Shown: positions 29,931 to 64,000 of the stretch, piece after piece
Position numbering within the stretch: the stretch's first letter is position 1
How the letters are laid out: the number at the start of each line of letters is the position of its first letter
DNA from: Chlorokybus atmophyticus
Lineage: Eukaryota; Plantae; Mesostigma and Chlorokybus algae
Length of the DNA stretch: 64,000 nucleotides
Direction: 5' to 3'
Assembly (NCBI GenBank): GCA_009103225.1
Contig: RHPI01003156.1
Span: 1,050,159 to 1,114,158 of the forward strand
Notes under the pieces: model-generated
Told to the model about the DNA's origin: nothing
Database searches by the model: none
What the model saw: the letters and a program-made list of their open reading frames with translations, nothing else
Made by a program: the position numbers and the translations under genes

Positions 29931-30256
29931 NNNNNNNNNNNNNNNNNNNNNNNNNNNNNNNNNNNNNNNNNNNNNNNNNNNNNNNNNNNNNNNNNNNNNN
30001 NNNNNNNNNNNNNNNNNNNNNNNNNNNNNNNNNNNNNNNNNNNNNNNNNNNNNNNNNNNNNNNNNNNNNNNNNNNNNNNNNNNNNNNNNNNNNNNNNNNN
30101 NNNNNNNNNNNNNNNNNNNNNNNNNNNNNNNNNNNNNNNNNNNNNNNNNNNNNNNNNNNNNNNNNNNNNNNNNNNNNNNNNNNNNNNNNNNNNNNNNNNN
30201 NNNNNNNNNNNNNNNNNNNNNNNNNNNNNNNNNNNNNNNNNNNNNNNNNNNNNNNN
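29931..30256. other. Assembly gap (326 N) flanked by G runs
   Basis: N run with GGGGG before and GGGGGGGGG after. Confidence 0.99.
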
Positions 30257-45095: not shown

Positions 45096-45309
<214 letters not shown>

Positions 45310-45689
45310 GCCCTCTTCAAGAATTTCTCCATAAGAAGGCAAGTAACCAAAGGTGACGCGAATGCGCTCAGCATGCTGTGCACGAACGTGTCCAACTTGG
45401 GGGGGGCAATAGCATCATGCATGGCAACAGTGTAGCGCATATAACTGCGCAATGGCAACAACCTACATGCATTGAGACTTACGTGCTCCATCAACACTTG
45501 ATGAATGTAAATGCTTACTATAGGATTAAACATCTATTCACACATAAAACACAATATGCTCAACTTCGGCATGTTAACATATAGCTGACCGGTAACTGTA
45601 CTCAAACATGTACTTTTATGGTGAACTTTGAGTAACATGCTACATTGCAATGTGGAGCTTGGGGGGGCAATGTGGACCACACTTATTTA

Positions 45690-45990
45690 ACGTCGACTCT
45701 AACAACCACTCAATACTCCGTGGGCAAACCCGAGAGCACAGCCCACACCACCTCAACTTCCTTGAGCTCTATGGCCAATGCCCAACAAGTTTTTCCATAA
45801 CGCTTTCGCCCGCGCGACAAACTTGCTTATTGGCTCCCCGCTCAGCTTTCGCAACGAGTTGAGTTCTTGTCTTAGCTGTAGCCTTCTTGCCATGTTGCGC
45901 GACTTGAAGTGGCTTTCCAACTTCAACCATAGCTCCTTTGCGGTGCTGCATTCTTTAACTCACATGTGCCGTGGATGGCCATGTTAGTGC
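45690..45990 (-). mobile_element. Ty1/Copia gag (UBN2-type) fragment
   Basis: ECSTAKELWLKLESHFKSRNMARRLQLRQELNSLRKLSGEPISKFVARAKALWKNLLGIG...EVEVVWAVLSGLPTEY, with stops and a frameshift. Confidence 0.85.
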
Positions 45991-45999
45991 TGTGCATTT

Positions 46000-46660
46000 C
46001 CTCGCCATCTGCACGTATAGCTTCCTGTAGTCCCCTCCATGGATTTGTCCTTCCATCGTGAACATCTGAGCACGCAACTTGGACAACATAGCTGTTGTAG
46101 CACATACCCTTCCTACTGCATGTCTCGTATGAGCTGCACCATCTCTGTCAGGAAGTGCTCGTGCATGGTGCAAATACGAGCAAACCTCCCAAATGAAGAT
46201 ACTACCAATCTAGCTGTGGACGAGATGTCGTTGTCCCGGTGGGGTGCTTTGCGCCTGGGCACAAACCTGAACGGCGTAGTGTTGGACTTATTTTACACCC
46301 TCGTAGCCAACCCCACCTGCGGAGACTGCAAGATTATGATATCTAACAACAATATGCTCACACCATTGGCTGACCGCAGCAAGGTGAGCATATGCTGCAG
46401 ATAAATTTCCCCTCCGGGTGCATGTGGGCTAAGATATATACAAGCCTCGAACTTTGATAATGCCACCACAATATCATCAATACAACGCAATACGTGTATG
46501 GCAAACCTTATGGCCAGCGGCCTTTATCATGTTGCCACCAACCTGTCCATAAAATCCAACTCGTAAGTTAGCAAGTCATGGCAAGAGAGATACACCCCCG
46601 CATTGTCTCCAATTGGTCTCCCTGTGAAGTTAATCCTCAGCCGTTTGCACAAACAGGTTG
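46000..46660 (-). mobile_element. Penelope-like element reverse transcriptase remnant
   Basis: GRPIGDNAGVYLSCHDLLTYELDFM (~GIPMGTNCAPLLADLFLYSYE); LRCIDDI (YIDD); LLDIII...LATRV*NK; GRFARICTMHEHFLTEMVQLIRDMQ*EGY (PLE thumb). Several stops. Confidence 0.75.
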
Positions 46661-47722
46661 GTTAGCAGAAAGCAAGCATGGCATGCAAGTCAACAGCAGT
46701 GGACACCTTGGTAACACCCTCACGTGAAACCACTGTCCCCCTCACCCACGTGTGTGTCACTTGCCTGGATGTTCATGTGCAAATGGGTTTCTTTGTATCG
46801 TCTCAACACATGTACATGCATGTCCAACGGGAAAGGCTAGTAGCTAGTTATTTAGTGCAGTGGATTAACCCGGTGGTGACAGCGGTGAAATGTATACTAG
46901 TGTGCATGTATTGCTTGAGTGGTTGTGATATATTGCATGCGTATGCCTAATCGCACGTCATATATTATGTACACATGCAAACACCTTTTGCACGAAACCT
47001 TGCATGTGTAACGACAAGTGTTCTACGTTGGTGTACAACGTAGTATAATTCCAGGACATCAATTGCACGTGCTCACGCTTCTGTAGTAGAGTACGCCCAC
47101 CGTTAATGTAGTCCCGCAATCTGCCAAATGCATAAGAATCCTTTATGATCTAACACTGCAACGTCTTGTATTTTCAGACGCCAATCGGGTCCCGCCAACG
47201 TCGCAGCTACTGTACGATGTTCGCTGCTAAGCACGACTGCAAGGACAGTCGGTGTGCTAGTTTGCATTTTAGAAATGAAGTCATCAACCGCTGCGTAGCG
47301 GTGGCGGTGTTCTGGCTAGCGGGTACAGCAGCATGGCACATTTCAGTGCGCCAGCAATAACTTCCGCTTTGCCTGGGTCTTACAGCAGCATCGGCAATGC
47401 GGGGGTTATATTTCGCAAACTAAGCATATAATTGAAGTTATGCTTAATGTACTCAAAAAAATGATGCAAACAAAACTTCCCCGCAATCGTACGTACATAT
47501 GCAAACAACCGTACTGAATTTGCATGTTATGTAAACTCATATGCCACGGCAACATTAACATTAGCTTGACTATATGCTGTGCGTGCACGCTTGGAAACTA
47601 CTCTTTCTTGATTCAACTCACATAGTTCATGTAGAGACAATGCATGTATCTAAGCTTTCTCCCTGAGGCGAGCTGCTCGGCGCCAAGCTAAGTTGTCCGC
47701 ATACGATATACATGATACCATA

Positions 47723-48101
47723 GTTGCACCATACGGCTCCAAAGTCCGTTGCATACGCGTATTGTTTAAAAAAAAAAAAAAAAAAGACTATAATGAATAA
47801 TTATTGCATGCGCGTATGTGAAGGCCTTCTGCTGTTCCACCGCCAGAAAAAATGCCCGTGCCCCGATTTGCATACTATTTTGCACCGCGCGTCACCAAAT
47901 TGTGAATTGCTGGTGGTGCGGCTCTACACTCGGGGCAGGGGCATTATTCTGGTGGTGGGGCAGTGCCAAAGGGTGGATCACCACTGGTTTAACAGCATAA
48001 TGTGCACGTATTACCGTATGCATCGATGGTCCATAATGCATACCCGTATATACCCGTATACATGGACTTGCAATGCATACCCGTATGCCGTATGGTGCAA
48101 C
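47723..48101. mobile_element. MITE-like element, about 380 bp, with 15-bp TIRs and a probable TA TSD
   Basis: TA|GTTGCACCATACGGC...GCCGTATGGTGCAAC|TA, with subterminal ATACCCGT repeats at about 48040-48086 and an internal poly-A. Confidence 0.7.
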
Positions 48102-48599
48102 TATGCATGACACCTTCTCCAATGGCGAGATGCCCCAATTCTCCAGCCCATCCCGCACCAACCGCACTCCCGAAGGCGTCGCAGATGCCGTGGTACTCGC
48201 TTGGAAGTTGTCGCGCCTATAAGGCTGGCAAAGTCATTCTCTGCCCCTTACTTATGTTGGTAAAACGGGACCAAGTGGGATTTTCCATGTCATAAGCGGG
48301 TGTAAGTGCTTATGGCGTCACGCCCCCTCGGAGGGGGGGAGTCTGTTGGGTCTTCTGCTCCTGCTGGCATTGCTGCAAGGATGCGCCGCTAACTTAGCGG
48401 CGTGTGGGTTGAACCCACAGCCATGCTCCTGGTGACTGAGTCTACCGTTTGCATGCATGCATGACTAACAGGGTGGGGTAGTAGTAGTGGTAGAGTGCAT
48501 GTAGACCTGATGTTATGCAGCTGCTGGCGGTGCTATATGGTGTGTGCTCCGTGTGGCATGCGTTGCACGCAAATCCATTCCCTTGCCGTTCTTTTATAC

Positions 48600-49520
48600 A
48601 AATAAGACTTCAGATGTACACCCGTTCATGCTAAGCGGGCGCTGCGTCCGCCTCAAAAGTCTGAGGGCCTCGAGCCACATGACCCCATCGCGGTACTGCA
48701 GCCACCGCAGCTCTCCGCTCAAAAATCGCCATCGCTTGGTCCCGCTCCAATTGCAAGACGTATGCCACGCGCTGACGGCAGAGTCGAATAATGCCCTCCA
48801 GACGCCGTGGCTCCGTCCCACGCACTATGGCGATGTGGCGCGCACAACATCGCAGCACGCTACTCTGTTATCATGATGGTGAGGCATGGAGTGCGCTACA
48901 CAACATGAGCGCACGCTTGCTGCATTAGTCGTGAGAGTATAGAGACATTATGTTACACATTCAAGTGGTTAGGTGTCATCTGCTAACGTGCCTAACAACA
49001 CACCAAACAACAAAAATATAGTGCCATAATACACGTAGCACGTGCTGTTGACGTGCGTCAACAACATCTCGCCCAATGGCACGTTGTCTTCCATCGTCAG
49101 CGGTACATACCCCTCTCGCATTTCTTGTACAGTGTGCATGCGTTCCTAGCCGGGCATTGCTCCCACCGCTGCCCCTCAAGGGGATACATGCCCCTCGCTG
49201 ACGCAATAGCGTGACGAAGTTGCTGACCCGCATAGGGGCAGCTCTTGACGAAACATGGCCTTGTGCTTATGCAAAGACACTAGCACGCGAGCACAGATGT
49301 TGAGGAGCTTGTGATGATGATAGAGGTTGACGCTTGTGGCAGTCCTAATAGTGACGTGAGTCTCCGCCGCTAGTGGGTAGAAGGTGTCGCCCGGCGGATG
49401 GACATGGTATTCCCACTACTTGCGCCGCATCTTCTGCGCTCTCGCCACAACGTGTGACCGTCATATATCAACGGTGAGTAGAAGCAAGTGGAAGATGCAC
49501 ATGCTGTTGCCGAATTGACT
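48600..49520 (-). mobile_element. Degenerate 3' end of a restriction-like-endonuclease (RLE) non-LTR retrotransposon
   Basis: RAQKMRRK*WEYHVHPPGDTFYPLAAETH resembles the RLE motif K..KY...D.F.PLA.ET.G; RQRVAYVLQLERDQAMAIFERR resembles the terminal RQRLSVALQRGNA motif. Confidence 0.5.
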
Positions 49521-50500
49521 TGTCGCAACTGCCACATGCTCTAGACGTGACCACTTCCTCTATATTGTGATGGAGTGGCGTCCATGTGGTAAACGGGTGT
49601 GATATGTGTTTGTGGCCATGGACTATTTTCTTCCCATGGTACATTCATATACACGTTCGCTACTGTCAGCTGCACACCAGTCTCACCGTCAGTCACAGCA
49701 CAAGCAGCATGCCAACCACCCATGTAATTCGATGCCGGTAGGATTTCTCATGCCGTAAGGACCTCATCGCACAATCTCTAGTATCATTGACATACAAGCG
49801 TGTGTCAAACCCGCCATTTGTATAATATACAAGTTTGCGGCCACAATGCACACAATGACTTGTATTGTGCGCAGTAAGGGTCCAGTGGATGCCTGATGTG
49901 AACTAGCAGCACCCACCTGCATCAATACGCAAAGACTGAAGCCTTGGAGCTGTTGCACTGGCAACAGGTGCCGTGCAGTCTCAGTTGCTGCCCACTTGGA
50001 AAGTGAACAATGCAGCACACAAAAACTGCTACAGTACTCTACCTGAATAGCGCACTACAAACCACGATAGTCTAGTGCAATCGCGAAAAACAATCAACAC
50101 ATCTAGTGTAAGGTCTTCTATCTGTAAGACCTTCTATGCGTGCTGGTGGGACTTGGCCATCATACCAGCAGAGGAAGCAGTACTGCAGCCAAGCCCTCAA
50201 CAATGGTCGGTGCAGTACCTAAAGCAGGTGAGTGCAGCAAGCAAAGGGTGCTAGTGTGCAGGTGGAGGCTGCATACAAAGGGTGCTTCCTCCACTCCTGG
50301 TGCTGGCGAAGGTGATGACGTATACTCTGCTCAACGAGTGCTCCATCCTCCACTGGCAGCGGTGACGCAACAAGAGCAGCATGCTCGCTGGGGCTCCAAA
50401 GTTGCAATGTTGGAAAGTTTTGAACAAGCAATATGACTGAAGCTCGTTGGCTGGTTGGATCAAATGGCCAATCGCACGAACTTACAGTTGTAGGCTGGGA

Positions 50501-51240
50501 TCAGCTGTTTGTGAGCACAGGTTGCGAGGCAGGATTCTTCTCGACGGGCTGCGTGCTTCTCCTTGAAGCAATCTTGAGGACATCAAGCAAGCGAACCCGT
50601 TTCATCTCGCGACCTGACATTGCAATGCCGTGTGACCCTTGTTCTGCATGACGACTATTACATGCAAAGACAACAAGCTCTTAGTTATATCAGCGACGCG
50701 CAAACCCTCACCCTCTTCAAAGCCGAGGCGGAGTGCTCGCTTCTCAAGTTCTACTGCCTGCTGATTGAGCAGTGATATTGGTGCGCTTACCAATTCTGGT
50801 ACACATGACAACAGTTTCATCAGGTTGTGCATTCTTCCATTGTCAAGCGCGCTGCAGCTGGACCCATGCATGCAGCCATGCATGGGGTTGAAAGCTCGCT
50901 GCATGCAACCAACTAACAGCACCCAAGCAATCAGCATTCAGCACTTATGCGTACGAGAGCATGCACCTGAGTATGCACTCCGTTGCTTCAAGGGACTACC
51001 TTGTGCTAGCGGACTATCTGCACTGCCGCTGTCCAGCTGCTGAATGTAAGCTTTCAATCGGCGATAGCGCTCTTGAAAGCCTTCCCGGCGGCGGTGACAA
51101 CGAGAAGCTTGCTGCTGTTGCTCGGTTGGAGCAGGCTGAGCAGCTAACGAAGCGGTGGAGGAAGCAGGGATCGCCTGCGCTGAATGTGAGCTGCCTGCGG
51201 CGTTGTCTGCTGCGACTGCCTCAGGACGGCCAGCCTCCAT
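50501..51240 (-). CDS. LIN52: LIN52-like DREAM/MuvB subunit, 3 exons
   Basis: FQERYRRLKAYIQQLD...RSAYS|ELVSAPISLLNQQAVELEKRALRLGFEE|GREMKRVRLLDVLK matches plant LIN52 (AVELEKRSIQLSLEEAKELQRV) and animal LIN52 (LAYQLGLDESREMTRGKFLNIL). Stop TGA at 50501-50503. Confidence 0.8.
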
Positions 51241-51477
51241 AAGCCAGCTGGCACAGCAGCGGCGTCCGCCTCCTCACTTCCCCAAGCTAGCAAGCATCAA
51301 GCAGTATGCACACCTTGCTGCTAGCTAAGCTTGGCTAGCCTACAACCACACCGCCACTGCCAATACCACCAGCCTACGTCCATGCTGTCACACCTCGTGC
51401 CAAACGGCAGCAACCCACCTTCCCCGCAGTTTTGACTTGTCCACAACTACAGCCTCAACACCACGTCCACCACACCC

Positions 51478-51537
51478 GCAGCCACAGCCACAGCCACAGC
51501 CACAGCCACAGCCACAGCCACAGTCACAGTCACAGCC
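51478..51537. repeat. (GCCACA)n hexamer microsatellite
   Basis: About 10 units, some as GTCACA variants, upstream of LIN52. Confidence 0.9.
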
Positions 51538-53599
51538 ATCTCAACCACCACCTCCACCACCTCCGCCGCCGCCTGCTTCGCGCACACAACCGACCTGACG
51601 TAAGTTAGCGAGAGTCAGAGTCAGGGAGAAGTACGTTAGTCGCCACCGTCAGCCCTCACTTTGAATGAGGTGAAAGCCATCAGAACTCGTTGAGGTATGT
51701 CAAACAGCCCGTTTCCGCTGCCTTTGCCGCTGAGCGTGGCGACAAACGGTTTGGGACCGCGCGAAATGACGCGAGTGGCTGCCGCAGTCACATATCAAGC
51801 TGCTCTCGATTTATGATGCACAGCTGGACTGTGGTGCACCTTTGACCACCTAGGGTCATTGCATGATCGACGGTGCTGGTGTCTCATGTAGTGCACGGCT
51901 TCACCCGCGCATTTCTCCCGGGGATCTGTGTGTAGACCGCCGCGGTAGGGGACCGCTTGGCCGTTGTCGGTGGCGGCCACGTGGGAGACCAACGGTCAGT
52001 GCATGCCGTTTTGATAGTGGCTGACTCTAGACCTGATAGAGACTCTGTAAGCGATCAGCCTTAACCTTACCCCTATTACAGTCAGAGTTAATGGCTCGCA
52101 GTTCAACGATCAAGTTGAACTCGCAGTTGTATTCACGGCATTTCATGTCTCATTGCACGCATCAATATCACCGTAAATGCATGTATCATTCATGCAATTG
52201 GCTTTCACCAGAAGTCAGGTCATGTTGTTCGTCGGTTCATCAAGTAGGAGTTCACATACACGAAGTCTATGTAATGTTTTGTGTTAGCTCGTGTTATTGT
52301 ATGCATGCTGTTGCCTTGCCCTACTTTGTGATGCGTCTTGCTCAGGTTCATTGCTATACGACAATGGTATCGATTGCGTGGCACATACTGCGAGGCATAT
52401 GCCAATACACTCACTTAAAAATTTTCGTAATCTTAAAATATAAAAAAGCTATTTACTTTGCCTACGGTGTGATGTTGTTAAATTTAAGGTAATTAGTTAG
52501 ATGAAGCTTCACTCAGGAGCCTTTAGCTCGCTAGAATATATGCCTTACGTGATGTAAATGCGAAAGACAAGGCAAAAGCAGTCAGACAGCAAACCATTCA
52601 TGTTACAGAGCATTTGCGATGCTTATAGCGTGTTATAGTATATGCATGTGTACTGCATTACTAAATAATGCATGCCATGCTTTTAATGCAGCGCACAACG
52701 TCTTGAGTAATATATACTTAATAATCATTATTTGTCATAGTCGATCATTACCATCACTGATAACCATACATGCACGCAGCCCCTAGGCTTTCATGCATCC
52801 GTAGAGTGCAGTGGTGTGCCTGGTGGCGTGTGATGCTGCAATAATAAGCTCCTCTACTCTTTGCCTTTGCCCTACTAAAAGGGCCTCGTATATGATGTGC
52901 ATACCTTGTGCGTTATTGCTTCTAAATCTACTCGGGCCATGCGCCACTCCGTAAGAGCAAGCGCACATAAGCTTGAATGGTAGTGCCAATGCCAATGCGA
53001 TGCGTGTGTAGCAAGCATGTGGGCTGGCCCAAGCCAACGATATGTTATGCTATGCTATGTACTAGATGCAGGCACACGCACGCAAACAATAGTGCATGAA
53101 AGGTATTGGAGGTGCAAGTGTCATAGTCATAGTTAAGTACCAATCACATTAATAGCTTAGCTTCATCAACAATGTCATGCCTATTGTCTTCGCATGCCAG
53201 CCTTCATCAAGCACATGGGCACCGCGCGTAGCTGTTCAGTTGTGAGTTCGATTATGAGTTGTGTGTTTTACATTGAGTGGGGTTTTTTTTGGGAATAGCC
53301 TCCATATGACTGTCAGCTTACGTTCTAAACAGTCATGACTTGTATAAATAGTCACAGTGTTCACCGGATCAGCCGGATGAGCAGGCCCACCCCTTTCTAG
53401 CCAACAGACGAGGGGAACCTCAGCATCTGGAGCCCAACCTCACCTAAGAGCGAGCAAGTGAAGAAAGCGGTTACCGTAGCAGCAGAGGCTCCCGCCCCGT
53501 CTCCGGCTTCACCTCCTTCCATTTCACTCCTCGTCAACGAGCTTCTCCACCTCTTTTTGACAAAGTCGACGGCAAATTGGAGCCTTCCAGCTTGATAAT

Positions 53600-56500
53600 C
53601 TCGCTGCGCTTCTCCGGACGTGCTGGCACTACCCCAATTGATGAGTTCATCATCAAGTTTCATGCCAAGAGGCGTCAGCAAGCCCTCAAGAGCAAGACTG
53701 GTTAAATTTTTTTGTCATTCTATATCATGGCTCAGTATCCTGATTTTGAGGCACATAATGTGTGGAAATCCATTGCTGAGCTGCACCATGTCGATGGCTA
53801 TGGCAAGCTCGCCAGCACCATAACATCCACATCGTTGCACAGCCCTGCAGCTGTTGCCCCTGCCACAATGGTCCCTCCAGCTTTAATCACCGGCCTTGCT
53901 TTAGCTGCAGCTATGCAGAAAGCGGAGAACGAAAAGGGCAAGTTGGTTGTTGCCTCGTCAACCCCTGCAGAGATCGAGGTTAAGACGGCGGACCGCCATA
54001 TCAGGGTACTCAACTGGACCGCTGCCATCATCAAGGACTGAGCAAGATGAGCAGCAAGCTGCAGCATCGAAGATGGGTGCATCTCCATTGCCAACGCTAA
54101 GGTCACGTGCTCCAGCTGAAAACAGTGTCTTCACCCTCAGGTCATAGGCACTGCGCGCACCAGCCATCATTGTCGGTGGTGTGATGTCTGACTCTCTACT
54201 CAAGGACCTTTACACTGCAATGCGGCGTACCCTCCCACCTCAAACCAACCGCCAGGTGGAGGAGCTGAGATGCTTCCGAAAGAAGCCCAACGAGGACCCT
54301 CTCCGGCTGTACTCGCGACTGAAAGGGCTGCTGAAAACAACTGACTACAAGATCATTAGCGACAAGGCAGCCACAGTGGCTTTATGTGGCCAAGCTGGAT
54401 CCCACCTTGAGTGAGTCAACGCGAATGACGCTAAACTGCAGCCGGCCTCTTGGCTACACCCTCAAGCGCTCAAGATTGCACAAGCCATCCACAAGCGCGC
54501 GGTGTATAAGAAAGAGGTTCTGGACATCAACCTGAGTGCCTCACGGCCCGTGGCAAGCACAAGTGCAGAGCCCTCCAAGAAACCATAGCTGAGACGTTCC
54601 GTTCATGCGCAACAATTAGCTCACGCTACCCTTGTTGCTCCGATGCTGTGCCAATGGTGTGGTCGGCATGGGCTATAAAAAAGAGTGCACTAAATGTTAT
54701 GGTAAGCTTGTGTGCAACTACTGCCATAAGATAGGACACTTAAAGGCAGTAAGCTGGCTCAAGTTCCCCGAGGTGCGGCCCTCTATTGACTACAACATTG
54801 GCAACAATGCTGGTGGCTACCACGGCAACAACAGCAACAATAATGGGAGCCACAACAACAGCGACAACGATGGTGGCTACAATTACAGCAACAACGCTGG
54901 TGGCTACCACTGCAACAACAGCAACAATAACGGGGGCCACAACAATAGCAACAACGCTGGTGGTCACAACAACGGCAACAACGTTGGTGGCCACAACCCC
55001 ATCAACTACCACAACAACACCATTGATCGCAAGGAAGAGCCTGGTTACGGAGGAAAGAACCGCCCTCCACATTGCAAAGGACCCGAGGGACGTCCGCGTG
55101 CTGAAGCTGTTGCTGTTAAAGCACCAATCAATCTACCACCTGTTGAGCAAGTTGCAGCCCTCATGGCGCGTGTTGCACAGTGGAAGGAGCAAAGAACATG
55201 ACTATCAAGCCTGCGACGCTGTGGTGGGCGTTGATGGCATCAAAGCGGGAGAGGAGCACTCTCATACCATCGCGAGTGCAACCGTCAAGACGTGCGCGTA
55301 GACAAGCTTGCGCATCATCAACAGCATTGTACGAAGCAACAAGTGGGGCTGCATCAGTAGCCACAATCATTGCTCGGATTGTCGAAAATCGGCACACTAC
55401 TGACTATGCATGGAGTTGGTGCAAGCACAAGCAGACACTCTCTATCAGAGCATTCACACACAAGGCTGATCAAAAAGGCTCTCTAAGGATTACAATCAAG
55501 CCCTACCGCGGGCTTTTATACCCGCCAGTTCTGCACCTGTTTACTCTAGAAGCCACCACAACTTCTACATTCAATCAACTCCTGCGCACTAAGTTGCGCC
55601 ACGTAGCTACTTATAAGCCCAAGAGCTGTTCAACAAGCTATACCATGCACCATATAGTACGTAACCACTGAGCTACAAGACTTCTACCACCACGCTCAAA
55701 CCCTTCCTATGTCGAGAAGCACGTCCACGCCTGGATTTTATCCATTGAAGTCCGCGCCTGAACCCTTCTCGGCTGGACCCTTCTCGCGCTTGAATCTTCT
55801 CGCGGTTAACTTTACCCACAGGGCAAGCTGACCAGTTACAAAAATATCCACAATAGGGACGATGTCGTTAATGACACCATTACAACCACACCAACCGGCG
55901 CAGCAAGTGCAGATACACCTGGCACCACTCTGGCTCCGTTGATGGAAAGCACCGACACAGCTGCAGCCGAGGTTGTTGAATCTGTTGGTGATGAAGGCAC
56001 CACACTAGCCACTGCTACAGCCATGGCACCAGTCACGACTACCGCTGTACTCACATCAACTACTTCTGTCACAACGACTGCTGCAGGTGCCACAACCATT
56101 GCTGCTGCTGATGCTGCCGCACCCTCTGCAGTCGGCACACTATCTGCGGAAGTCACCGCCACCGTAGCATCAGAGGATCGTGCAGCCCCTCCATCATACC
56201 TTGCTGTCACTCAGCAAGTGCCGCACGGATCGCAAATAGAGCGCACCTTGGTGTCCGTCTTCTGCAACATTGAACCCATCACCATTGTATGCGGCCCAGG
56301 AGGGCAACGCACAACACGAGTGGCACAAGATGATCCATATTGCCACTACCACCTCCAGAGTACCACACACTTCCGGAGCCCACACAGCAACGGTTGAAGG
56401 ATGAGATTCTTGCAGTCACTGCGCCCGAGATGCGAAACCGTCTCTTTTGGGTCACCTATCGACAACCTGCTGTGTTGGAGTTGGCAATCCTGTTGTGCTT

Positions 56501-56950
56501 GACATTCCATAAAAGGCTGCAAGAGGCACCCACTAAATCGCGACCGCCAATGCCTGCTTAGCAGGTTGATTTCGAGCCCTCACGGTTGGAGCCGCTCGAA
56601 CTCCGGCGTCGCTCGGTGCAACACCTTGTGGTGGCCACACAAACATGCTGACATGCTGGCCCTGCACTCCGTGGGCTTGTCCAAGGGACCCGATAAGAAC
56701 GATCCTCGGCCCTCTACTAGCTAGTAGCACGCATACCGCTATTGACTAAATCAAGCGGCACAAGTAGATGCGCGACGGCAGGCGTAGAAGAAAGCATCAC
56801 GCGTTGCTGCTAGCCAACCTGCAAGGGCATTCGACGACCCCGGTGCCTCCACCACACTCCCGTTGGTGCCATCTTGCGCAGCCGCGGTTGCTCCACAGGG
56901 GCACGCAGCTGCTGCTGACCAAGCGAGGGCGTTGGCGCAACAATTTAGCG
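53600..56950 (+). mobile_element. Degenerate Ty3/Gypsy-like gag region with two zinc knuckles, an Asn/Gly-rich repeat and a Thr/Ala-rich tail; no intact pol or LTRs found
   Basis: VEELRCFRKKPNEDPLRLYSRLKGLL (retrotransposon gag motif). Frameshifted CQWCGRHG.YKKEC and CNYCHKIGHLKAV knuckles at about 54640-54750. Many stops and frameshifts. Confidence 0.65.
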
Positions 56951-57491
56951 GGGTTTTCGCCACGCTGCTTCCTTCCTGAGTTAATGATATGCCTGAAGCT
57001 GTCACCTACCATCTGTGCCCGCCGATTTGCCCGTGAAAAAGAGGGCTGGATGTGTGGCAATTGCAGGCCACGCTGCCTATTTCAGCCAATTTATGTATGT
57101 TATTGGCGACACTAGGTTTGGGTTTAATAAACCTGGCTGAATTTATAAATAGTTTGGCTTTACAGACGGGGACGTTATATTTGCCCTGAGTGGGCCTTAA
57201 ATCAAATGATAAGGCCTTTAGATGCTAGTCGCGTTTTATGTTATGGCCGGCTCTTTACATAATGGCAATGTTAATTAAAACGTCTTTTAATGCAGGGCCA
57301 AAGCGCTTACAAGAAAAATTCTTTGCCAAAGTAAAAATAACAAACCACTTTGGCCGCTGCGGCAAGCCTTTTACACTCTACTCTTTATACTATCTTTATG
57401 GCTAGGCTCTTTTTGCCAGCAAAAGTGCGCTGAAAAACGTAAAATCTGTTAACATACAGTATGTGAGTGAAGTTCAAGTAAGCCCTATTTT

Positions 57492-58383
57492 ATGACATAA
57501 ACGAACATATTATGACCAAGGTCATGCAGCTTAAAGAAGAAGGGGCAGCTGCCAGCAATAATGAGGGGTGCTTGTTTATTATTTGTGGGCAAAACATTGA
57601 TAGACGCTACTTTCAACATAAATCAGAATTTATCATTGGCCGCTCTGAGTTGGCTGCTTGGGGTCAATTAAAAAAGTGCTTCCAGACAACATGCCAAACT
57701 GGTGACCAACAACATTCGCACCTGGCTTAGTGATACGGGCTCGACCAATGGCACGTTTGTCAACAACCAGCACATTACTTGCATGAATTTACAGGATGGT
57801 AATCTTGTCCGGGTGGGGCAAACGATTTTTAAGTATTTGTCAGGCTCTAATGTTGAAAACGTATACCACGAGGAAATGTATCATCTCTCAACAATTGATG
57901 GCTTAAGCAACACTTATAATAAGCGATGTTTTTAAACGCTTTAGGTTGTGAATTAAATCAAACGCACCAATATGACAGAAGTTTATCGCTGGTGCTATTT
58001 AACATTGATTACTTTTCAAAATAAATAATATTTATGGGCATTTCGCAGGCGATCATGTGTTACGAGAATTGGCGACGTTGATTAGTCATAACATTTGGGC
58101 CTAAAATTTGTTAGCTCGTTATGGAGGGGAAGAAGTTGCCATTATGCTGCCTGAAGTAGATATCGTTTGGGCTGTTTTAATGTGTGAAAAGCTGCGTAGT
58201 TTAACAGAAGAAAACGTCATTGTCTTTAGTCATGAAGAGATTTTGTCGACAATTAGCCCAGAGATCTATTCATATAATGCCAAAATAGGTTATATTAGCT
58301 TAGGTTCTTTTATTGCCGAGGCTGATGCTAAATCATATGCTGCCAAAACCAACCAAAACAGCCGCAACCGTTTGTTTGCCTGA
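57492..58383 (+). pseudogene. Bacterial FHA-GGDEF diguanylate cyclase pseudogene
   Basis: FHA: FIIGRS...SRQHAKL...LSDTGSTNGTFVNN...LQDGNLVRVGQTIFKYL. GGDEF: IDGLSNTYNKR...LSLVLFNIDYF..INNIYGHFAGDHVLRELA...LARYGGEEVAIMLPE...AEAD...YAAK...RNR. Frameshifts near 57680 and 57930 and an in-frame TAA at 58102-58104. No introns. Confidence 0.9.
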
Positions 58384-58440
58384 GTTTTAAGCGCCAGCCA
58401 CATTTTATATAAGCCTTGGTGGATTGCATGACGGACCTTT

Positions 58441-60298
58441 ATGCTTGAGCTCCAAGACAAAATTGCAACTTTAAACCTCATGTCATTGACTTAATTACCG
58501 CTGGTGAAGTGGACGAGCGGCCCAGCTCTGTTATCAACAAATTGATTGAAAATGCTTTAGATGCTGGGGCGCACCACATCGAGGTGACTTTAGGGGGCGG
58601 CGGGCTTGAACAAATCATTAATAGTGATGATGGCAATGGCATGTCTCCTAAAGATGCCAGTCAATCCATTTGAAGGCATGCCACAAGTAAACTACGGCAA
58701 GCCGCAGATCTGGCAGAGGCTACGACTATGGAGCTTCGGGGTGAAGCTTTGTCATCCATTGCGGCGGTCAGCCATTTAACTTTGATCACGCGGCCACCTG
58801 CCAGCGCTGCTGGTTGGCATCTTGTTTTGGCGGGTGGACAATTACAAGCTAACGCCTCAATAGGCTGCCCGGTTGGTACCACGCTTGAAGTCAGCCATTT
58901 GCTTTACAACACTCCCGCCCGCCGCAAAATTACGCGCGCCTGCCACAGAGCACGCCCACTGCTTAGAGATGTGCAGCCGATTATTGCTTAGCCATAAAAA
59001 CGTGAGTTTAGTGCTGCAGGCCGCCAACGGCGCTTGCTGGCTTTTCGTGCAAATGACAATAAAGAGATACGTGTAGCTGCTTGATTGCGGACACCGGTGA
59101 ATTCATTCATACCTTTGCAATGGCAAGAAGGTGATGTAGAAATCAAGGGTTTTTTTAGCTTTGCCGCGTTCAGAGCACGCCGATAGCCGCGAAATGTGAT
59201 TATTTGTCAACGGCCGCTCTGTGCGTGACCGCTTTGTGCAGCGGGCTGTTGTCAGAGCCTGGCGGCCCTTTTGGTCAGCAGCGCTACCCCACAGTGGTGC
59301 TCTTTTTAAAGTTGACAGCGGCTCCATGATGTAAATGTGCATCCGTAAAAGCTTGAAGTCCGTTTTGCGCGTCCTCAAGCTATATTCACCGCCATTGGCC
59401 AAGCTTTTTTTAATGGCTTTGAGCAAGCTAGCAGCAGTCAATTATGCCTCACCTTCAAGGTGAGGTGGGCAAAGTTTGCCCACCTCAAGACTGCAAGCTG
59501 CAACAGATTGGTTTTTGGCTCAAGCTACCACAAGTAGTTTAGATTTAAGAGTAACTCCAAGCAGTGATTTAAAGCCACCATCACCAGTGGCTTCTCCGGA
59601 CAATTTTAGCTTGCCAGCGGCAGCGCCAATATTAACGATCGTGGGCTTTGCGGCTGCCGCTGTGCAGATGGTGCGTATTGTTGAACAACGTTTTTATTTT
59701 AGCGAAGGTGGCCACGACTTTTGGTTGCTAGATTGGTCCGCTTGGGCTCACTAAGAAGCTCTAAAGAACTTTTTCTCGAAGCCCAAACCGCTTTAGTGAG
59801 GCTTGAAACCTTACTCTTGCCAGCATCTCTGACACCTGCTGCAGCTTGGCTGGATTCGTTGGCGCCAGCTTGGCCAAAGTTGGCTATATATGGCTTTAAA
59901 ATAAAATAAAATAAAATAAAAACCGGTAGGTCTTAGCCATTATTTGGTGCGGGCTATTCCTCAAGCTCTATCAGCCATGTCAGCCACTGAAGTTGCCCAA
60001 CATATTTTGACTGTCGCCTAAGCGACGCCTTTAAAGCAGAGCCTTGGTCATTTGCACCAAGAGATCTACCAACCAATGTACGAGCGCTGTGTGGCACGTT
60101 TACAAGGGCCCTGGCAAGAAATTGCCGCCAAAGCTTGAGCACAGCGATGGCTTGCCAAAAAAGAGTTTATGATCTGGCAAGCAAGCTCTTTTTGTCAACG
60201 CTTGAGCACCGCTACAGTGCAAACATGGTGGACTATTGAGTCAAATCTAAGCGTCTTAAAGCTCTTTGAACATCTCGCAATTTGGTTGATAGGTTAGA
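58441..60298 (+). pseudogene. mutL: Bacterial DNA mismatch repair protein MutL pseudogene
   Basis: LITAGEVDERPSSVINKLIENALDAGA...DDGNGM...*RHATSKL...LRGEALSSIAAVSHLTLITR; GTTLEVSHLLYNTPARRK; FVNGRSVRD. In-frame TGA at 58671-58673, several frameshifts, and an (AAAAT)n run at about 59898-59922. The 3' end is approximate. Confidence 0.9.
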
Positions 60299-60728
60299 CT
60301 AGCATAAAAGCGGGCCGCTTTGGGGGCAGCATGCAACAAACAGTGCTTTAAACCTTGATTTTTCAACCAATGTTCACATAAAAGCAACGCGTGCCCACGC
60401 GATGGCTGCGAAAAGGTTCTTGCACATACATTTGGTCGACATACCCATAGCGATTTTTAGGGCGTAGCCAAAAAATTGGATTGGCACTTAATATGTCGGC
60501 CCAACCAAAACCAATGGCTTTAGCGTCTTGCTCGGCTAAAAACAAATTCAATTTGAGGCGCGTGCAGCGCCACAAAAATATCATGGTCAAGTTTTGGCAT
60601 GATCTTTTCGTTAGTGTTTCGTTAATGTTTTCAGGGTCAAACTCTTTGATAAGCTCTGTAAAAAGAGCCACATTCTACTGCTTACTTGCTTTTGTCGCCG
60701 GATAATATGTCATGTTTGTAAGATTCAT
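60256..60728 (-). pseudogene. Bacterial GNAT N-acetyltransferase pseudogene
   Basis: LFLAEQDAKAIGFG...YGYVDQMYVQEPFRSHRVGT (GNAT motif A), continuing after a frameshift as LKNQGLKHCLLHAAPKAARFYASLTYQ. Internal TAG near the start. Confidence 0.75.
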
Positions 60729-60914
60729 AATGAAAAGGCTTTCAAATTATCGGCAACTATGCTACAATTGGCTTGTTTTTATGAGGTCTGTTAAAACTTT
60801 TGTGGTCTCCAGTAAGTTTAACATTGACGAGTTGGGTTTAAATCTTTTAAGGTGAAATCTCTAAAGCAAGCGCGGGCATTTTTGTCAACCGCCAAGCTTT
60901 TTATGAATGAGGTA

Positions 60915-60991
60915 GGGCCGTTAACTCAGCTGGTAGAGCATCGGCTCTTTTATTCCGCTGGTCGGGCGTTTAATTTGCCCACGGCCCACCA
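60915..60991 (+). tRNA. trnK: Bacterial-type tRNA-Lys(UUU) pseudogene with encoded CCA
   Basis: Perfect acceptor stem GGGCCGT/ACGGCCC plus ACCA; D arm ACTC-AGCTGGTA-GAGC with a position-10 mismatch; anticodon loop CTTTTAT with a broken stem and one extra nt; T arm GGGCG-TTTAATT-TGCCC lacking the invariant C56. Confidence 0.8.
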
Positions 60992-60999
60992 TGTTAGCC

Positions 61000-63590
61000 T
61001 TAGCTCATACGGCAACTTCTACTTGTAAAAGTTTTTTAAGCTGAACCTATTTAAAGCGTTAATGCTTTCTCATTCATGTTTGCCAAATATTCAAGCAAGA
61101 AATATTCAAGCTTAGCTAATTTCGGCCAAGTTTTTATCCTTGTCTAAGCGCATAAGTGAGCTAATTGCTTAAAGGCCTCTTTCATGTATATCTTTGGCAG
61201 CCTTGATGCTTAAAAGGTGGATGTGAGCAAGTAAATTTGCGCAGCGAAGGCTTCAGGTAGTTTTAAAGAAGCTAAATGTAAAGGTTTTTGCACATTAGTG
61301 GAAGTAAAGATGTAACTTTCTTGCTCACAAAAAAGCCGTCAAATCTACATTAGAGCGTATTGACTACTCTATATCAAGGCTATCGGTAACAGTTACAGGC
61401 AAGTGGGTGCCATCGGCGAGATAAAATGTCAGTAAAGGCAATAAGGTTTGGTGATAAGTCAGCTTTAAATGTATAATGGGATCAGATGTGTGGCTTTGCT
61501 CAAGATTGTTTTTGCAGGTGGTTAAAATCTCTACCTGCGCTGATGATAACGAAATATTGGTCGCCTGTTTATAGGCCAATAGCGCGGGCTCTTGCTCAGG
61601 GTTGTAAGCGCGCTTGGCAGCAACAGCGGCAGCCAACTCCGGCAAATTTTGTCGGCCTCCAGCAATTGCAAACAGCGCTGCGCTTGCTAAATGCGGGTTT
61701 CAAGGCTCAAAATAGTTTGCAACTGCTTTTGCAGCGCAAAAAGAGATTTATTTGTGAGGGCGGGGTTGTCCTTTGGCACGTCTTCAAAACGCTGCCTAAC
61801 AAGGTGTTGCCGTAAAGGAAAGCTCCAAACAGCTACGGCCCTAATGCTAAACAGTCAGCTGTTGCACATCTGAGGTGTGGCAGCTGTGGCCAAGGAGTTA
61901 GCAGCCGTAAACAATATTCGTCGAGCAACAAAAGTATCGGCTGCAATAATGGGGTTGTAGGGCCGCTTTTAATATCACGGCAGAATATGTACGGCTTGCT
62001 AGCTAAGGTTTTAAAATACGACGGACCCCACGTTTAAAAGCGACAGCTCTGGCAAATGAAAAAAAGGCGGTAAGACTCTTTTTCAAACGAGAAACGGTGC
62101 CAGCTCTGGAAATAAGGGCGGTGCCATTTGCCAGAATTCCGGCGCTGGTGACTTGAGGGCGGTTAGTTTTGACGGCGGCAAAATAATGAGCAGCCCATCT
62201 ACAAGATATTTTTGTAGATTATCTTTTTGGAATTAACTAAATTCGCTAGCGTTTATCCACATTATTTTCAGTTTTTAAGTATAACTTGAACAGTTTAAAT
62301 ACATTGATGTTGGCCATAAGTGATGCTCGTTGTGCATAACTGCAGCGCTGGCTTAGCATGGCCAATAAATGCAGATTAACTCGAGGGTGTGAGGCTCTTG
62401 CCAAATCCCTTGCTAACTTTGTAAACAATAATTGATCAAGAGGTTTTCACTCTCGGCCACGAGAGTTAACAAAGTTAAGCTGTGACGAATAATTTTCAGC
62501 GCTTGGGCATGCTGCCGAGAGGCTAAATGAAAAAGTAATAATTGTAAGCTATCGTTAATAGTTTGAGCCTGCAAAATGTCGTTGGCGCTCATGCTGGCAA
62601 TAAACAATTCAGCTTAACCATGCGCGATTAATGTCGGCGTCAAAAACTACTTATTGGCTGGTTCTTTTGTTTTCCTGAGGCGAAGATAACTGACTATGCG
62701 GTATCAATGCTTGCCGCTGTTGACTGTCGTGCTTTCGTAGCATTAAATAAGGCCCCCCCAAAAAAAGGCTGGCGTGGCAGTTAACAGCAGCCAACGCGGA
62801 TCTTGCTGCCAAGCCCAACTGCCATCGGCTTGAGGCACAAAGCTCAAGTGGTAGCGTTGATTCTACAGACGTTATCCCCGCAGCGGTTTATCGCATGTAT
62901 AAAGTACCGGTCTTATCAACAAACCTTAATACCATTTGCAAGAGCGCCGGAAAAATGTTGAGGTGTGGCTAAACTTGAAGATTTTTTATCGCCTCAAAAG
63001 GGAGGCTCGGTGGCATCTTGATGGGGGCGCGCAATATAGTGAATTGTTTTTTGAGTTGCTGCTTGTATGGCTTCTTGCAACTTAGCTTTGAAAAGAATTT
63101 CTTGGTGTAGGTTTAACGCTGCAATAGCGGAGAGTTGTTTCCGTTGTAGTCCTTTGGCTATGGCACGTTATGGTTGCCAAGACCATTGTTAAAAATAATA
63201 ATGGTTGATGTTAACATAGAGGGCATTAGCGGAATATTATAGGCATATTCTTTCATGATTTTATGGCGCAGTTGTTGCAATAAAATTTTGCTCAGCTTAT
63301 GAATAAAAAAATTAGTGAAGCATTTCCATCCTCAAGAGCCAGAACGTTGACCAGTGTGCCAAGCTGCTGGAGTATCAATACAAGGTTGCGCTTGACCACA
63401 ATACCTTGGCAATAGTTTACTGTATAATGTTGTGGCGCCATTTGTTGCGGTCGGCAAAATAGCAAGAGAAATAAGTTAAAACAAAAATGAGTTTGGTTGC
63501 AAATCATGAAGAGTTTTTGCATCAATATTACCCCGAGCTATGACCCAAGCATTTTTGTTTTTGGTGGTTCTGAAGTGCGCATTGTGGGAA
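61000..63590 (-). pseudogene. Further decayed, intronless, bacterial-like coding sequence of unknown product(s)
   Basis: Same AT-rich composition as the mutL block. Protein-like minus-strand stretches broken by stops, e.g. LRQHLVRQRFEDVPKDNPALTNKSLFALQKQLQTILSLETRI* and the ORFs at 61364-61645, 62246-62428 and 62413-62607. Confidence 0.5.
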
Positions 63591-64000
63591 ACCATTGTAA
63601 TTGAGGGGGAGGTTACCTCATCCCTCAAGGGTACACCATACAACGAGGTGGAGCCGGTATAATGGGAGATCAACAACTCCGTACTGCGCGCATACGACTA
63701 GAAGTCACGCTGCACAGGTTGGAGGGCAGTGCATAAAGAGAGATGATGGGGATGCGAGAGGGCAGCGCAGCTCGAGCATGGATAGTGACATGGCTCGTCG
63801 CCAATAACCCTGCCGTCCCCATGTTTGCCTATGGCATTACAGCATTATTGTTGGGGGCGTTCATCCGTTCGCTACGACAAGCATATGATGAAGTTTCCAC
63901 CACTGCTCCAGACACCTTAGAGGGAGTGCAGGAGGCAATGCTACGTCTTCTAGGAATAGAAACAGCACGATAGCGTTGGCGCATCGCCATCGCTAATGAA

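Follow-up and report, generated by a model that had tools for sequence, protein, structure and literature searches.

Introduction

DgcB of Bdellovibrio bacteriovorus (Bd0742; PDB 6HBZ, 6HC0 and 6HC1) is a diguanylate cyclase in which a tail, an FHA domain and a GGDEF domain follow one another, and it is needed for prey invasion (PMC6733907, PMC3271064). DgcB is a GGEEF enzyme that is switched on via its phosphorylated tail (PMC6733907), and three proteins of Myxococcus xanthus with the same domain layout, mxan4029, mxan1525 and mxan5199, have been called DgcB homologues (PMC8354745, PMC6733907). Close spacing of pgi and dgcB has been stated to be specific to Bdellovibrio (PMC8354745). A preliminary description of the DNA studied here had named DgcB as a cyclase required for prey invasion and had called its layout characteristic of myxobacteria too; the literature bears out the requirement for prey entry and the existence of myxobacterial homologues.

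Fragments of Wolbachia in insects and nematodes are decaying bacterial inserts in nuclear genomes. In algae, the transfers reported are usually of single genes that work and contain introns, and their donors are difficult to identify. We analyse here 64,000 nucleotides of the streptophyte alga Chlorokybus atmophyticus (assembly GCA_009103225.1, contig RHPI01003156.1, positions 1,050,159 to 1,114,158 of the forward strand; hereafter the window), which are eukaryote-like overall, with ~52% GC and few long open reading frames under the bacterial code. We consider it likely that the window holds the dead remnant of a dgcB-type gene within an inert insert of ~6.6 kb that came from an uncultured, Myxococcota-labelled lineage, phylum names being throughout the labels that submitters gave to their metagenome-assembled genomes (MAGs).

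Results

A full-length but broken FHA-GGDEF gene

Pfam recognised an FHA domain at 57672-57932 (E 3.6e-11) and a GGDEF domain in two parts, at 58009-58101 (1.4e-4) and 58105-58380 (6e-6). On an HMM of ~296 positions made from full-length FHA-GGDEF relatives, five pieces from the window (Table 1) were colinear, at positions 6-55, 63-148, 147-177, 178-203 and 208-294, and because they cover 6-294 of the ~296 positions the entire gene of ~295 aa is present. Summed tblastn scores against relatives reached up to 334 bits, and the similarity is therefore not due to chance. The pseudogene contains both the linker YLSGSNVENVYHEEMYHLSTIDGLS and, at the active site, the string ARYGGEEV. All features that the preliminary description had listed, from the tail through the FHA domain and the linker to the GGEE-type cyclase, thus lie where it had placed them; what has to be added is that they belong to a pseudogene.

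Table 1. Features of the bacterial-type block and of its genes, in window coordinates.
Feature	Coordinates	Strand	Basis or remarks
Lower-GC block of bacterial origin	57000..63600	.	GC 43.7% vs 51.6% in the window outside the block
DgcB-type tail-FHA-GGDEF (GGEEF) diguanylate cyclase pseudogene	57503..58383	+	Pfam, HMM mapping, identity to relatives
FHA-GGDEF piece 1	57503-57655	+	frame 2; tail and start of FHA
FHA-GGDEF piece 2	57675-57932	+	frame 0; C-terminal half of FHA and linker
FHA-GGDEF piece 3	57935-58018	+	frame 2
FHA-GGDEF piece 4	58021-58095	+	frame 1
FHA-GGDEF in-frame TAA	58102-58104	+	replaces I-site
FHA-GGDEF piece 5	58108-58380	+	frame 1; GGEEV to end
FHA-GGDEF terminal stop	58381-58383	+	
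mutL pseudogene	58473..60290	+	8 frame changes; in-frame stops 58671-58673 and 59346-59348
GNAT acetyltransferase pseudogene	60259..60710	-	convergent with mutL; at least 1 frameshift
Decayed tRNA-Lys(UUU)	60915..60988	+	Rfam tRNA 36.1 bits, gathering score 29
Unassigned remainder of block	60989..63600	.	block-like composition, no gene recognised

No single open reading frame of ~280-300 codons runs through the region, which consists of four reading-frame segments with at least one in-frame stop. The frame changes from 2 to 0 near 57655-57675, from 0 to 2 near 57932 and from 2 to 1 near 58018, and the lesions amount to at least three frameshifts and at least one in-frame stop; a further TAA (57669-57671) is located where the frame first changes. 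The RxxD I-site, whose place is five residues ahead of GGEEF, is kept in the relatives as RRQD, whereas the window reads WA-stop-N (the stop being the internal TAA of Table 1), which destroys the motif. In addition, the GGEEF of the active site has become GGEEV and the DID metal site has become NID, with Asn in place of the first Asp, and these changes fit what one would expect of a decayed former enzyme and not of an active one. The tail reads NEHIMTKV versus ETVVTKV in the relatives, so that one of two Thr is retained and a phospho-Thr position can at most be predicted. The phosphothreonine-contact residues of the FHA domain are retained in GRS, SASRQH and GSTNGT, and DgcB and the window therefore have the phosphopeptide contacts in common: the R of GRS (R61 of DgcB), the S-R of SxSR (S75/R76) and the T-N of GSTN (T96/N97). 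Judged from its sequence, 57503-58383 reads as a full-length but dead FHA-GGDEF cyclase gene by which no full protein could be encoded.

Comparison with DgcB and with the FHA-GGDEF layout

Among solved structures DgcB (6HBZ) is the best match of the FHA-linker piece from the window, and the window gene resembles DgcB in its three-part layout, with GGEEF as the active site in DgcB. The match is distant, at 37.5 bits and 30/84 identities, and at least 150 cluster representatives are closer to the FHA-linker piece, each with at least 68.8 bits. P0173, a relative of the window gene, aligns with DgcB over the full length (157.8 bits). The preliminary description had ascribed a G.N.E..YH linker to Bdellovibrio DgcB, but this motif, which is the mark of the window's family, is absent from the DgcB linker EKGSIEAMTNAAMYDRAQKDALT. 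The gene that follows dgcB, bd0743, encodes an RpoE-like sigma factor, in contrast to the mutL that neighbours the window gene. Nor is the layout diagnostic of a donor, as had been argued, since FHA-GGDEF proteins of ~290-330 aa are also found in clusters in which Fibrobacterota or Acidobacteriota is the most frequent phylum.

Neighbouring genes and borders of the block

The mutL pseudogene was recognised by TIGR00585 (mutl, NCBIfam) on two N-terminal pieces (E 8e-20 and 6.9e-30), and ten pieces of it were colinear on a MutL profile (positions 8-504), with 47.6% identity to P0287 over 353 columns; its end would lie near 60290 according to a reading by eye of the C-terminal CPHGRP-type region. 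The GNAT pseudogene matched Acetyltransf_1 (Pfam, E 2.2e-4) and, in tblastn, aligned with the mutL-adjacent GNAT of the relative contigs L002, L083, L085 and L086 in two HSPs that lie in different frames (32-65% identity). The tRNA-Lys(UUU) has a mispaired anticodon stem and was not called by ARAGORN, and over 47 nt it is 83% identical in DNA to the tRNA-Lys(ttt) of L002. All four recognisable genes of the block, the tRNA included, are thus broken.

GC content changes sharply at both ends of the block at 200-nt resolution, from 0.61 to 0.47-0.38 at the left border (~57000) and from 0.38 to 0.56 at the right border (~63600). The observed/expected ratio of GpC is 1.77 in the block (57100-63590), as against 1.35 for the host and 1.1-1.27 for the relatives, and that of TpG is 1.16 in the block versus 1.48 in the host, the TpG/CpA excess being below that of the host; the composition of the block fits neither the host nor the sampled relatives. 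Algal-type DNA flanks the block on the left and on the right, and as 45291-64000 contains no N the assembly, on which the two junctions rest, is gap-free over both borders. No second copy of any part of the block was found elsewhere in the window.

The longest stop-free pieces of 60989-63600 and of 57229-57402 matched no family in scans of Pfam, NCBIfam and PHROGs, and open reading frames from the loci of the relatives had no tblastn match to the remainder of the block at E 1e-4 and gave noise only at E 1. The gene-less stretch of ~2.6 kb begins directly after the tRNA-Lys; tRNA-Lys is a frequent integration site for bacterial mobile elements. Elsewhere in the window, a GC dip (0.318) at 30-31 kb is accounted for by a run of 326 N at 29931-30256, which rules out a second low-GC insert at that place. 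On the host side, open reading frames at 54632-55301 are Asn/Gly-rich (NNxGGY/H repeats), with Thr/Ala repeats in another frame, and this low-complexity sequence sits ~2 kb to the left of the insert.

Relatives and their gene order

When 1.84 billion cluster representatives were searched exhaustively with HMMER, the FHA-linker piece being the query, the top single-stretch matches were P0002 (63% identity) and P0081 (79% over 47 aa). P0081 is located on a 356-kb contig (L002; JASCQV010017243.1 of GCA_030012885.1), where it is followed by mutL, then by GNAT on the other strand and farther on by tRNA-Lys(UUU), and at the DNA level L002 matches the window colinearly over all four features (67-83%). 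The relatives of P0081, gathered by a word-index search, form a tight FHA-GGDEF family of ~295 aa, and the names among the best 120 matches of P0081 are all 'Myxococcota bacterium' or 'Deltaproteobacteria bacterium', the latter being an old catch-all that NCBI now places under Myxococcia and that is uninformative by itself. The window gene is 55-59% identical to the closest family members over ~267-290 residues (4 HSPs), and the relatives are ~64-86% identical among themselves. The nearest named MutL proteins likewise come from 'Myxococcota bacterium' MAGs or from 'Deltaproteobacteria bacterium'. A cluster look-up gave no taxonomy finer than 'Myxococcota bacterium' and added one more such name, and a look-up of MutL in the ESM Atlas gave broad 'Pseudomonadota' clusters only.

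The order FHA-GGDEF, mutL and GNAT on the opposite strand is common to L002, L083, L085 (GCA_016218825.1) and L086 (GCA_041288095.1; 'Myxococcota bacterium'), L002, L083 and L084 being metagenome contigs. Contigs in which mutL follows an FHA-GGDEF gene, which the preliminary description had suggested looking for, were thus found. tRNA-Lys(UUU) lies downstream of GNAT in three of these four contigs (L002, L083 and L086), and in L084 mutL lies 4.5 kb beyond FHA-GGDEF. Upstream, L083, L085 and L086 have surE and then a LysM/M23 peptidase gene ahead of FHA-GGDEF, and the wider neighbourhood, with tRNA-Pro, surE and LysM/M23, is conserved among the relatives. The Myxococcota-labelled loci thus resemble the window in the ~295-aa family, in gene order and in the clades that both gene trees assign them to (below), but they differ in carrying genes for an acyl-CoA synthetase and a thiolase between GNAT and tRNA-Lys, both of which the window lacks, and in having intact genes, save for L002 with its frameshifts in the assembly.

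Frameshifts occur in the FHA-GGDEF genes of L002 (9640-12370) and L001 (10001-10900), as well as in the mutL of L002, and these are probably errors of long-read assembly. In L085 (6630-8891) and L086 (6546-8807), two Myxococcota-labelled MAGs, pgi stands directly upstream of the FHA-GGDEF gene, as it likewise does in Bdellovibrio, and the adjacency of pgi and dgcB may be older than was assumed (PMC8354745).

Phylogeny of both genes

For both trees the in-frame pieces of each window gene were merged on the profile, with gaps at the breaks. The careful MutL tree comprised 55 rows and 363 columns, included no Bdellovibrionota rows and was rooted on Bacteroidota, which had been collected by a scan of named genomes with the L002 MutL as query and the pattern VIDNGCGM (Bacteroidota made up most of the matches listed, with identities of 28-43%). 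All 34 Myxococcota-labelled rows joined the window in one clade (100/100), within which the window fell into an 11-row subclade (95/84) together with the MutL of L083 and L084. Two unlabelled proteins came next, then Anaeromyxobacter/Myxococcales with Bradymonadia, farther out Desulfuromonadales and Desulfosarcina, and the Bacteroidota stood outside; a larger quick MutL tree was concordant with the careful one. The Anaeromyxobacter/Myxococcales clade is separate from the clade of the window, and no cultured, well-classified organism is close, the MutL of Anaeromyxobacter sharing just 42% identity with that of L083.

In the FHA-GGDEF tree, again without Bdellovibrionota rows, the window lay in a 21-row clade (SH-aLRT 96) beside the proteins of L083 and L084. 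The two trees that result from these sequences are thus concordant down to the level of the L083/L084 sub-lineage, and the phylogeny that the preliminary description had called for places both genes within the Myxococcota-labelled lineage. Window branches are long in the trees (1.4 and 0.93), as is expected because the genes are pseudogenes. A MutL from a 'Clostridia bacterium' MAG (P0311) stood inside the Myxococcota-labelled clade (100/100), beside L086; this bin is likely mislabelled or contaminated.

Base composition of the donor

In the in-frame pieces from the window GC1, GC2 and GC3 are 0.49, 0.40 and 0.43, whereas the relatives have 60-70% GC and a GC3 of 0.68-0.96, compared with 44% GC for the block. 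The encoded residues are also shifted towards AT-rich codons, with a FYMINK fraction of 0.32 in the window versus a median of 0.25. As the window gene is still 55-59% identical to its relatives, we infer that only ~0.1 change per site can have accumulated since insertion, which would not suffice to lower GC3 to 0.43 from a starting value of at least 0.68, so that loss of GC since the insertion cannot by itself account for the low value. The GC content of the donor was probably below that of all sampled relatives and would have been at most ~50%, as expected of a branch that has not yet been sampled; on the basis that all relatives have 60-70% GC and the block 44%, the true donor lineage is therefore unsampled. 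The AT-rich donor that had been proposed in the preliminary description is plausible in the light of this GC3 difference at 55-59% protein identity.

Discussion

On the basis that the nearest homologues, both gene trees and the order of the four features agree, the donor lineage can be named. We propose that the product of the donor gene was an enzyme of ~295 aa in which a short N-terminal tail with Thr preceded an FHA domain that binds phosphothreonine and a GGEEF cyclase domain with an RxxD site for inhibition by the product. If it was activated as DgcB is, c-di-GMP synthesis would have been turned on once the tail had been phosphorylated and bound by the FHA domain of the partner chain (PMC6733907), and the ancestral protein most likely worked like DgcB. 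The gene would have arrived within one fragment of a bacterial chromosome, ~6.6 kb long and carrying FHA-GGDEF, mutL, GNAT on the minus strand and tRNA-Lys, whose source would be an uncultured Myxococcota-labelled lineage with L083, L084 and L002 as the nearest sampled members. Since insertion the fragment would have evolved neutrally, without any role in the alga.

A donor from the Bdellovibrionota with a true dgcB orthologue, instead of one from the Myxococcota, is quite improbable in our judgement. It would accord with DgcB as the top solved-structure match and with the full-length alignment of DgcB to the relatives, with the position of pgi in L085 and L086, and with the low GC of the block, given that some Bdellovibrionota are AT-rich; the trees, moreover, were built from rows of other phyla. 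However, DgcB is outscored by the many cluster representatives mentioned above, lacks the family's linker motif and is followed by a sigma-factor gene and not by mutL, and among the best 120 matches no Bdellovibrio-type name occurred for either gene in a search in which RefSeq proteins carry names. The preliminary description had offered Myxococcota or Bdellovibrionota as the donor: homologues, trees and gene order uphold the former, and the DgcB score and the sigma-factor neighbour speak against the latter, so that its donor was largely right and its argument from architecture is insufficient alone. That some other phylum had acquired the cluster, the Myxococcota signal then reflecting the history of the cluster, we regard as very improbable, because MutL and tRNA-Lys belong to the core of the chromosome, both gene trees agree to the L083/L084 sub-lineage and the tRNA-Pro, surE and LysM/M23 surroundings are conserved among the relatives; in its favour are the FHA-GGDEF proteins of comparable length in Fibrobacterota- and Acidobacteriota-dominated clusters and the one 'Clostridia bacterium' MAG that has a MutL of the window's clade.

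The block might also be DNA of a culture-associated bacterium, whose AT-rich genome was perhaps in the course of degradation, and have been misassembled onto algal sequence. This is unlikely, since with algal-type sequence on both sides and no gap two false joins would be required, since the lesions include in-frame nonsense substitutions besides indels, and since every recognisable gene in the 6.6 kb is broken, even the tRNA; in its favour are the junctions, which rest on the assembly, the dinucleotides of the block, which are not host-like in GpC or TpG, and the frameshifts that the long-read contigs L001 and L002 of relatives show in the same genes. The chance that the FHA-GGDEF gene is functional in the alga through introns or recoding is negligible: transferred genes can gain introns as a general fact, but here each shift of frame takes up no more than a few bases and nothing is inserted between the homologous pieces, a TAA lies in frame at the I-site, both DID and GGEEF are altered and the neighbours are equally broken. 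We therefore reject this reading.

The block resembles the Wolbachia-type inserts in that it comprises several genes in donor order, encodes no protein and has accumulated frameshifts and stops. It differs from them in that the host is a streptophyte alga, the donor stands outside the known endosymbiont lineages and a single piece of 6.6 kb is seen. The type of event is thus ordinary, a decaying bacterial insert, and the donor is unusual and well documented; to our knowledge, Myxococcota are not among the donor phyla usually reported for algae. In contrast to the usual single-gene cases in algae, a multi-gene piece here retains the gene order of its donor, and the block displays how transfer begins, before any selection. 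The gene has no present function, and the value of the finding lies in history and method and not in the biology of the alga.

The lower GC of the donor hints at an unsampled branch of the Myxococcota. The unusual algal associate that the preliminary description had envisaged is speculative. Whether the fragment is the fossil of a close physical contact in which the alga met an AT-rich bacterium from an otherwise GC-rich, uncultured Myxococcota lineage is rather doubtful; such a bacterium may have been host-dependent, be it predatory, epibiotic or intracellular, and would be without a sampled close relative. If the fragment is a fossil of this kind, streptophyte algae once had myxobacterial partners, and the bulk transfer of non-selected bacterial chromosome into the nuclei of these algae would continue to supply gene transfer with raw material.
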